Assembly: GCF_006345805.1 (NCBI RefSeq)
Contig: NC_042999.1
Span: 62,868,001-62,932,000 of the forward strand
DNA: 64,000 bases
Reading direction: 5' to 3'
Source of the DNA: Octopus sinensis
Taxonomy: Eukaryota
Under the pieces are notes generated by a model, which worked only from the letters and a program-made list of their open reading frames with translations, was not told the DNA's origin and ran no database searches. Position numbers and translations under genes: made by a program. Position 1 is the first letter of the stretch. Each line of letters begins with the position of its first letter. Below, piece by piece: positions 22,101 through 25,100 of the stretch.

Positions 22101-25100
22101 TAGATAGATAGATAGATAGAGAGAGAGAGAGAGAGAGAGAGAGAGAGAGAGAGAGAGAGAGAGAGAGGTCACTAAATATTTTAAAGACACTGTCTTTTTG
22201 ATTTATAAATCCATCCCCAAAACCTCATATCTGTTAAAAGGCATGGCATGTAGAACAGCAGATTGCATAAAATGATGGGATATATAAAGGAAACTATCTA
22301 GTTTGTTATTACAGGGGTTTTATACTGCTAAACAATGAGGAATCCTCTGTAGAGGCTCTCATTCTGCTACAAGGAGCAACCAAATCTCCCTCAATTCATA
22401 CAAGACAATCTTGAAAATAAGGAAGGACACAATGGACATTGACTTGAATATACAGAATGTTGAGATATCACGGCAGGAACACTTTTGATCATCAGTCTGC
22501 TTGATTACAGTTGACCTGAGCTTAAACAACGAGAGTTCTAGCAGAAAATTCCAGCAGACTGATAATGAAGAACAGTATAGTACATTTTGTAATTTTTAAA
22601 TACCTTAAATGTACCGTATCCGAATTCAGTGAAATCCAGTGTTCTCTGGTTTTCCTTTTACATTGTCATTGGTGCCTTCAGTTTTATGTTTCAATTAGCA
22701 CAATGGAAAGCAGAGGGGAATTCATTTGAAATATTAACCCTTTTGTTACCAACCCAGCTGAAACGGCTCTGGTTCTAAGTACAAATGTCTTGTTTTCATA
22801 AGTTTTGAATTAAAATCTTCCACCAAACTTTAGTCACAATTTTTATGTTCCTAACACTAGCTTAATGATAACTAAGTTATTTTACTAAATTCTTTGTTAT
22901 ATTTGAAGTAATTGAAGTAATTTCAAAATAAATTACAGTAATGTAAGGGTTAAGGTAGAAAATAACTTAGCTACATCTAACAATGATAGCATTACAAATT
23001 TTGATTTCCAATTATAAACTATATAGGCACGGAGATAACTGTACAGTTAAAAAGCTTGCTTTGCAATCACATGATTTTCAGTTCAGTCCCACTGTGTGAC
23101 ACCTTGGGTAACACTGCTCCAAGTCGATCAAAGCCTAGTAAATGAATTTGGTAGATGAAAACTGTAAACACATACATTATATATGCCATTATATATGCCA
23201 GCTCCAGAATAAATTTCTGTCCATGCTAGTATGGAAAAATGGACATTCCAAGAGATCTAAAACAGTTTCTTGAGAAAAACTAAGACTAGAATTTTTTTTT
23301 TAGTGCTTTTGATAAATTCTGAAATAAACGTGTATAAATTGTTAATTCTTTTTTACCTCAATACCCGTTAAAAACCAAGAATTTTGTTCAATATTGGAAG
23401 CTCTTCGAGATGATGAATATTGAGTTTGATAACTATGTTCACTAAAACTGCTCCTGGCAGAAGAGCAATTTAGGCCAGGCAGTGCATCAACTGAGCTCTC
23501 CCCAAGAGGTAACATTTCAACTTCCTGTACAGCTGGAGCTGAAAAAAATAAAAGGAAAATAAATGACATTTGGGTTACTTAGATTAAAACAGTGATTAGG
23601 AATTAGAGTAATGTGCATCAACAGACCTGTGCTTTTAAAATGGATGTTCTGGGCAGTTCTAGCCTTTGTAGCTTGTTCAGGTAAAGAGTCAGTGATGGCA
23701 ATAAACATCTTTAAGTCATTGTAAGACAAACGAATGTTTAAAAGATTGAGTGTCATCTGTATGATAAAAGAAACAAACATGACCATAGAAGAAAATCAGA
23801 TAAATGCAGCACAAGAAACAAATATAAACAGAATTTCAGCATGAATTTTCATGCTATGTATAAGCATATTTTATGACTTAGAAAAGGAAAGACTGTCTCT
23901 ATGGCCCTTTCAAGAACCTCCAAGACTGATGGTAGGAAAAGATGTTATCTTTAGACCAGAGACCCAATCGGTTTAGACTCTGTTAATGATGTCTTAAGGT
24001 TAAATTATTAACCATCGTGCCAACAACCACCTTGAGCTTCATGTGTCTGACACATGTGGGCATGCCTACAAAGTCAGAAAACAGCACAGCTCCCATGACT
24101 TTCAGAAACAATTTTTCACACTGAGTTGGTGAAGCATGGAACAAACTACCTGCATCACTTGTTAGCTGCTGAGACATTACATCCTTTAAAACCTCCATGC
24201 TTCCTGAAATTCACCAACACTACACCTGATATCCTCTCCCTCCATGCACATGCACACATGTATATCATGGCTCATACACTGTTCACTTTCCTGACATTTG
24301 TACATAATTCTATGTACTGTACATGCACCTTTGATGAGTTGTAGTGCACCTGAGCATTATACTTAATAATTTCATTATTATTATAAATGGCAGCATTAAA
24401 CTAGATGACAAAATAATACCCTGCATTTTTGAGCAAAAGAAGGGTTTTTTACAAAGTCATACAACCTGCTGAAAATAACAGTCAAACATCTTTGAATCAC
24501 ATTTTACAACCTTAAAAAAGGGAATATTTGATAATGTAGTATCAAAAACACTGCAAAAATATGAAATGTTTTTGGAAAATACATATTTGACTATAGGTCT
24601 GGGAGTAGTTGATTATATCATACCTTAATTGTCATTTTATTAAGCCCCAAGAAGGATGAAAGGCAAAGTTGACTGAAGCAAGACTTAAATTCAAAACATG
24701 TTAGAATACAAAAATCATTTCATCAGACACTCTACAAATTCTGTCAAATAACTGTAATGTCCAACAGTAACAATAATTATAATCAACTTACTTCAAGAAC
24801 TAGAGGATTTTCCACAGCTTGAGCATCTAGCAAGCCAGTAACACGTGAAGTTGAGCGATCTGGCAATGGGTTGGCATTAATTTCTATGGTAATGCTGGTT
24901 GGATCAATAATTGAAAGGGCAGTTTCCTCTTCTTCCATTAGAAAACAGGAAAATACTTCTAGGCTCTGCAAACTGCATGACAGTGGTAAGTCTTGTGCTT
25001 TCGGACGATACCGTAGCACAGCAGTGCACTGTAGATAAAGACAAACAAACAAGCAATAAAGAAAACTTTTATACGTATATTTTCAGAGATAGAAACATGA

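Follow-up and report, generated by a model that had tools for sequence, protein, structure and literature searches.

An Octopus sinensis VPS13D gene that appears to lack the UBA domain

The minus strand of a 64-kb stretch of the Octopus sinensis genome (contig NC_042999.1, positions 62,868,001 to 62,932,000; hereafter the window, to which all positions below refer) carries part of a gene that, judging from its sequence and gene order, is a VPS13D orthologue. The visible portion extends roughly from early in the middle region as far as the beginning of VAB. The VPS13D protein transfers lipids as a bridge made of repeating beta-groove (RBG) units, and mutations in the gene lead to ataxia and spastic paraplegia in humans. 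The feature that sets it apart from VPS13A-C is the UBA, a ubiquitin-binding three-helix module of about 45 amino acids (aa). In VPS13D, this module has been placed in the loop between RBG12 and RBG13 (Levine 2022, PMC7613979). An initial annotation of the window, made from the DNA letters, had described the UBA of this gene as degenerate or absent and had proposed a lineage-specific loss of ubiquitin sensing. The gene, the segment at which a UBA would be expected, and the corresponding segment of orthologous proteins were therefore compared.

The assignment to VPS13D draws on collinearity with L004, a 17-kb intron-poor contig with a VPS13D-like gene that has VPS13_M, UBA and VPS13_VAB. When the open reading frames (ORFs) of L004 were compared with the window by tblastn, 16 of the 17 matches were strictly collinear along the minus strand, from 63978 to 1277. 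The other match, weaker and out of order (L004_3547_4059, at 36755-36648, E = 1.1e-4), repeats a locus covered by L004_4101_6482. Apart from the first 90 residues of its UBA exon, every piece of L004 has a counterpart in the window. Additionally, the spliced 211-aa window peptide matches Pfam VPS13_M (PF25033) at E = 2.1e-17 (63 bits, cutoff 50) as the sole family at E ≤ 10, and a further weak VPS13_M match is found in exon 35982-36839. The N-terminal chorein domain and the C-terminal ATG2_C/PH regions are outside the window.

The exons and introns around the expected site of the UBA are given in Table 1. Exon A holds the conserved RLSYxD...QA anchor block and is aligned to the invariant R-L-S-Y-x-D columns of 16 orthologues. 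It is followed, after an intron of 88 nt, by exon B, and the motif GIE|IKA is unbroken across the junction of exon B with the next exon. The exon coordinates, the short intron and a Ser-rich interval of 72 aa between PEQA and GIE had all been proposed in the initial annotation, and direct reading confirmed each of them. Ser accounts for 14 residues of the interval (19%), and S, T, Q, N, P and G together for 46%. In contigs L003 and L004, the RLSYxD...KQA exon is followed, after one short intron, by an exon for the entire UBA, a linker and GIE(M/I)KC, and exon B is at the position of this UBA exon. Therefore, given also that GIE|IKA is unbroken, a canonical UBA could only be located in the tail of exon A, in exon B, or in the 88-nt intron. 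The earlier claim that no UBA exon fits into this intron holds, as about 135 nt would be needed and read-through from exon A encounters a stop.

The intron between exons A and B is in the same variable linker as the introns of L003 and L004, and intron orthology with them is not claimed. A common intron was considered and dropped; in L003 and L004, the introns with the best consensus lie further downstream and in phase 0. In the window and in contig L005, 14-17 aa separate the QA block from a phase-1 intron. L005 came to attention through an exhaustive representative search with P0001, which returned only P0001 itself and P0008, a 62-aa exon-A-like fragment. The contig of P0008 (L005:1001-1189, Logan SRR27362834) has an exon-A-like exon, NIRLSYIDMKMFLAILNSIPQQALKA, that is 52% identical and belongs to a more distant relative. 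Its phase-1 donor is at the same relative position as that of the window, and the contig ends ~100 bp past the exon, before the next exon.

The Pfam UBA models (PF00627 and PF22562) were compared at E ≤ 10 with the spliced 211-aa peptide, with the 72-aa interval, with exon B, and with exon B of L001, a contig from a related species, and matched none of them. The interval and both exon B sequences gave no match to any Pfam family at all. This HMMER search was one of the checks that the initial annotation had suggested. The same models recovered the positive controls, namely the L003 exon (2.9e-10) and the L004 exon (1.3e-7), above the curated cutoff. Similarly, no UBA family was found by Pfam in any of the three minus-strand frames of 21600-25000, which includes both flanking introns. 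A VPS13D-specific UBA hidden Markov model (HMM) was compared with 2809 six-frame ORFs of at least 15 aa from the whole 64 kb; the best match had an E value of 0.27, and exon B was not among the matches listed. That best match, a 19-aa frame at 19011-19067, is ~2.6 kb downstream of the GDYYNR/WEPF exon ending at 21671 and was judged to be due to chance. When exon B was scored directly against this HMM, it obtained -0.8 bits, and 33% of 2000 shuffled sequences scored as well.

The 32 complete VPS13D UBAs examined have near-invariant LGF, DC, AL and AA[IL]WLT[QH]NA signatures, and a position-specific scoring matrix (PSSM) was built from them. It was applied without gaps, as a full-length matrix and as half-domains, with 10-20 thousand shuffles for comparison. 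The best score of exon B was -75.5, whereas shuffled sequences had a mean of -67.3 (P = 0.90), and the half-domains fared no better. In the best register, the window sequence LPLG falls under ALGF. The initial annotation had reported that the segment has no LGF...AL...AA.WL signature, and the Pfam, HMM and PSSM results agree: L-G-E is found at the best register, and there is no helix 3 of the AA.WL type. It had also seen a faint echo of the UBA in strings such as NSWFL. These strings are present, but the segment matches no better than shuffled sequences by HMM or PSSM, and Smith-Waterman comparison of exon B with the 11 most similar orthologue regions likewise gave scores at chance level. Two further candidates were set aside. 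An 11-residue string of the window resembles KRRRESNESRQ of P0017 and P0021, at a similar distance from the MGF position; the resemblance had no support from alignment statistics and was dropped as evidence of decay in place. Restoration of a UBA by adenosine-to-inosine (A-to-I) RNA editing was rejected by inspection, as almost none of the conserved positions match and many of the mismatches would need changes other than A-to-G.

The predicted fold was compared in the same way. The exact translation of exon B was submitted to AlphaFold2 as a single sequence, as was the equivalent 60 aa of the UBA-bearing orthologue P0006 under identical conditions. The P0006 control was predicted to form three helices (residues 5-13, 19-28 and 33-43), with a predicted local distance difference test (pLDDT) score of 80.2 (core 88-92) and a predicted template modelling (pTM) score of 0.58. 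The best PDB matches of the control model are all UBA domains, the top one being the Cbl-b UBA-ubiquitin complex with a root-mean-square deviation of 0.9 A. Because the control folded, the method could have detected a three-helix fold in exon B. However, exon B was predicted to be coil, with no helix of at least 4 residues, a mean pLDDT of 58.6 and a pTM of 0.12. This prediction had also been suggested in the initial annotation, and no three-helix fold was seen. At the level of sequence and predicted fold, the UBA is thus absent; of the two words used earlier, "absent" fits the segment better than "degenerate", for which there is no residual signal.

A profile search yielded 72 VPS13D-region proteins, of which 16 span both the RLSYxD and the IDDCxDxDVPL anchors. 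A UBA is found between the anchors in all 16 of these other fragments, with scores of 38-87 bits, and the window is the only exception (-4.3 bits). The loop has not simply been deleted, since the distance from anchor to anchor is 106 aa in the window and 97-184 aa in the UBA-bearing orthologues. Precomputed Pfam lists gave the impression that loss of the UBA is common among the orthologues; this was rejected as a threshold effect, because direct scoring finds a UBA in all of them.

Two observations on the UBAs of other animals are recorded here. The closest orthologues (L003:451-981, L004:7958-8503, P0004, P0005, P0017, P0019-P0021, P0025 and P0031) have a common UBA subtype, MGFxRxxSxxALxxCxGR[VL]E[ED]A[AV]xxL[ST]S, which is without the DC and WLTQNA signatures of the majority type and is followed by a long Ser/Arg-rich linker. 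In the clade with this subtype, the UBA may already have been evolving faster. Additionally, in P0035 (NCBI Vps13D-like isoform X2, Halyomorpha halys), the LGF loop and helix 1 of the UBA are missing, at about columns 370-400 of alignment A3, and the UBA profile matches at positions 18-44 only, which suggests that alternative splicing is able to truncate the UBA in some animals.

The same state is present in a second species. Logan contigs from two sequencing runs of the related species (L001 and L002) have both exons, a 90-nt intron and an intact frame, and no UBA. Divergence between the window and L001 is 0.135 in the non-coding flanks. Exon A has a single synonymous change (non-synonymous divergence dN of 0, synonymous divergence dS of 0.04), and exon B has a dN of 0.058 and a dS of 0.105 (ratio about 0.55), together with one in-frame 3-nt indel. 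The changes in exon B cluster in the middle of the exon, and the first 19 and last 20 codons have one non-synonymous substitution each. This pattern fits a weakly constrained linker that is still translated; it does not fit a pseudogene or an assembly error.

Overall, these results suggest, with a probability of roughly 0.8, that the UBA of VPS13D has been lost in this lineage and that the loop at its former place is Ser-rich and predicted to be disordered. Several points weigh against this conclusion. The junction of exons A and B and the absence of an alternative exon are read solely from the genomic DNA and its splice consensus. The window covers part of the gene, and another region of the protein could have a UBA; some algal VPS13s have one at the C-terminus. 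The dN and dS values derive from 13 substitutions in total (12 in exon B and 1 in exon A), and the AlphaFold prediction from one single sequence. Lastly, there is no close relative among the 16 comparison proteins (the orthologues most similar to the window are 52-60% identical to it in the conserved downstream block), and hence the loss is not placed within molluscan or cephalopod evolution.

If the UBA was lost, this could have occurred by decay in place or by replacement of the interior of the exon, with the flanking blocks, splice sites and reading frame retained throughout. No residual similarity survives that would favour either route. The octopus protein would probably still act as a lipid bridge, since the flanking exons are intact and constrained, but would not bind ubiquitin chains through the RBG12/13 loop. 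Coupling of VPS13D to ubiquitin-marked mitochondria would then be absent or would proceed via other partners, as is presumably the case in nematodes. A more elaborate and improbable form of this idea is that in octopods the UBA was replaced by a Ser-rich, phospho-regulated linker. The ends of the segment are nearly unchanged, and one of them has an RRxS consensus for basophilic kinases, which might serve as a kinase-driven switch at damaged mitochondria. In an animal whose nervous system is very large, such a linker would make VPS13D independent of ubiquitin marks.

It is improbable that a UBA exon exists and was missed, whether as an alternative or cassette exon outside the window, as an exon split into parts too small to score, or as a transcript-specific exon. 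Only part of the gene is in the window, and the P0035 isoform described above hints at alternative splicing of the UBA region in some animals. However, the canonical loop exon must fall within 24791-22002, where the three minus-strand frames are without a Pfam UBA, and the VPS13D-UBA profile finds no convincing match among the six-frame ORFs of at least 15 aa in the 64 kb. Together with the short intron, the unbroken GIE|IKA motif and the same layout in the related species, this leaves little room for such an exon.

Loss of the UBA also has to be weighed against a segment that still binds ubiquitin, either as an extremely diverged UBA or through a different short motif. In the MAFFT alignment, LPLG is placed beneath the LGF loop and the near-invariant G and D columns are preserved, and the two ends of exon B, as noted above, hardly differ between the two species. 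However, conservation of these ends over ~13% divergence has little statistical power, and MAFFT and HMMER do not agree on the register of exon B. Glu takes the place of the Phe of the LGF loop, Pro-Gly is found at the site of helix 2, and nothing resembles helix 3. Given that exon B scores no higher than its shuffles by HMM, PSSM or pairwise comparison, and that coil is predicted where the control folds, continued ubiquitin binding by either means appears very unlikely.

Less probable again is that the locus is not a functional VPS13D, but a different VPS13 paralogue in which a UBA was never present, or a duplicate that is decaying. That only part of the gene is visible in the window gives this idea some room. 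However, every significant homologue covering the region in the protein collections is of the UBA-bearing VPS13D type, including two named VPS13D by JGI and one named Vps13D-like by NCBI (from Halyomorpha), and VPS13A/C-type proteins were not retrieved. The invariant IDDCxDxDVPL and YYNRxLS blocks are kept in the window (alignment A3), the exons are open with consensus splice sites, collinearity extends over 63 kb, and exon A has no non-synonymous change relative to L001. VPS13_M, collinearity and best homologues thus all identify the gene as VPS13D, and the UBA in the RBG12/13 loop is the one feature expected within the window that was not found. A UBA is not obligatory for VPS13D orthology, because nematode VPS13D is without one (PMC7613979). 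An assembly or sequencing artefact in the window is highly improbable, as nothing was found in its favour and independent short-read assemblies from two runs of the related species reproduce the exons, the short intron and the frame.

Relative to canonical VPS13D of human and Drosophila, the octopus gene matches in the flanking motifs RLSYxD...QA, G[IV]E[IV]KA..CIC.IDDC.D.DVPL and YYNRxLSGWEP, in VPS13_M and in the gene order to VAB. It differs in having no LGF loop, no DC/AL helix 2 and no AA.WLT.NA helix 3, and in being predicted as coil at this point rather than as a three-helix bundle. The UBA is the proposed link between the lipid bridge and ubiquitin-marked mitochondria. As summarised in PMC12005150, Anding 2018 found that the VPS13D UBA binds K63-linked ubiquitin. 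In flies homozygous for a deletion of the UBA, development proceeds to the prepupal stage, but the mitochondria are enlarged and fail to be cleared, and phagophores stall (Shen 2021, PMC8406608). Because these flies survive that long, the UBA can be regarded as a separable accessory module that is not part of the lipid channel. The octopus gene resembles this Drosophila vps13d(deltaUBA) allele (Anding 2018; Shen 2021, PMC8406608) in that the UBA only is missing from VPS13D. However, the fly allele was engineered in the laboratory, and the larval intestine of these flies has enlarged mitochondria that are not cleared, whereas the octopus state is natural and is fixed in at least two species.

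A UBA is also missing from VPS13D in C. elegans and other worms, as are several RBG units (Levine 2022, PMC7613979). The nematode gene (C25H3.11 / vps-13D) is like that of octopus in having been retained without a UBA, and it still affects mitochondria (PMC7613979; Wang et al. 2025, PMC12005150). The proposal of a lineage-specific loss of the UBA is supported, as all other spanning fragments have a UBA and the related species does not, but the loss is not unique to this lineage. The worm protein is shortened and has additionally lost RBG3 and one RBG5-6-7 set, whereas the visible part of the octopus gene is collinear with a full-type orthologue and has a loop of 106 aa. Because of this collinearity and the normal loop length, the octopus loss looks confined to the UBA itself, and it looks like a second case that is independent of the nematodes. 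If so, it would be a cleaner case, since only the domain is gone, and the ubiquitin link would be dispensable even where the nervous system is large and long-lived. Comparison with the octopus gene could then help to show for which functions VPS13D needs ubiquitin binding. Since nematodes show the same loss, the finding is a modest evolutionary curiosity, and its practical value is limited until the loss has been mapped on the cephalopod tree and confirmed in transcripts.

Table 1. Exons and introns of the VPS13D gene around the expected UBA site, and other elements of the window
Feature	Position	Strand	Size and boundaries	Remarks
Upstream VPS13D exon (ends ENPLVLE)	24792-25028	minus	237 nt; phase 0 at both ends; acceptor ctacag, donor GAA/gtaagt	tblastn to L004 VPS13D-like ORF: 47% identity, E = 9e-12
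Intron upstream of exon A	23757-24791	minus	1035 nt	no UBA-like frame (Pfam in 3 frames, custom HMM)
Exon A (w22 in the initial annotation)	23627-23756	minus	130 nt; acceptor acag, donor gtctgt; 43 aa + 1 nt, ends in phase 1	
Intron between exons A and B	23539-23626	minus	88 nt; GT-AG, phase 1, ends ttttcag	
Exon B (w23 in the initial annotation)	23357-23538	minus	182 nt; donor gtaaaa; (A)+60 aa	ends NSWFLTGIE
Ser-rich interval TKART...NSWFLT between PEQA and GIE	23366-23669 (including the 88-nt intron)	minus	72 aa	
Intron downstream of exon B	22002-23356	minus	1355 nt	no UBA-like frame; holds a dispersed repeat copy
Exon with IDDCxDxDVPL anchor	21920-22001	minus	82 nt; 27 aa + 1 nt	splice sites read directly; tblastn to L004: 63% identity; invariant columns in alignment A3
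Exon with GDYYNR/WEPF	21671-21788	minus	118 nt; (Y)+38 aa+(K)	splice sites read directly; tblastn to L004: 49% identity, E = 9e-9; Pfam VPS13_M positions 739-760
G+C-rich tandem block	2431-4678	both	units of ~345-443 bp	
Retroelement-derived ORF	4757-5329	minus	191 aa	
ORF with sub-threshold GIY-YIG match	15270-15707	minus	146 aa	
Dispersed repeat, copy in the intron downstream of exon B	22778-22916		~140 bp	
Dispersed repeat, copy upstream of exon 24792-25028	25202-25338		~140 bp	
ORF resembling a LINE endonuclease end (putative)	60604-61092	minus	163 aa	no Pfam match

Other elements of the window were recorded in addition to the VPS13D exons (Table 1), and an Rfam scan of the window gave no match. 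The two copies of the dispersed repeat are in the same orientation and are 95-96% identical; one is in the intron just downstream of exon B, and the other is two introns upstream of exon A. The tandem block has a G+C content of 0.45-0.48, compared to about 0.35 elsewhere, and is inside an intron of the gene. It has internal sub-repeats of 62 nt and 40 nt with 86-93% identity, and looks like a satellite or a tandemly amplified element similar to a short interspersed nuclear element (SINE). The 146-aa ORF is also intronic; its match to the GIY-YIG nuclease family is below threshold (E = 0.0035, 18 bits, cutoff 22.6), and it may be the remnant of a Penelope-like or other GIY-YIG-bearing mobile element. 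The 163-aa ORF was compared by eye with long interspersed nuclear elements (LINEs), and the resemblance is putative. Many homologues of the reverse-transcriptase-like 191-aa ORF have a PHD finger; the ORF itself has no Pfam match. By these homologues the window belongs most probably to Octopus or a genus close to it: identity is 92% with the representative of a cluster built at 90% identity, to which the Octopus vulgaris hypothetical protein CAI9740156.1 belongs, and 70-77% with two O. bimaculoides proteins, and the next named match is cnidarian, at 56%.

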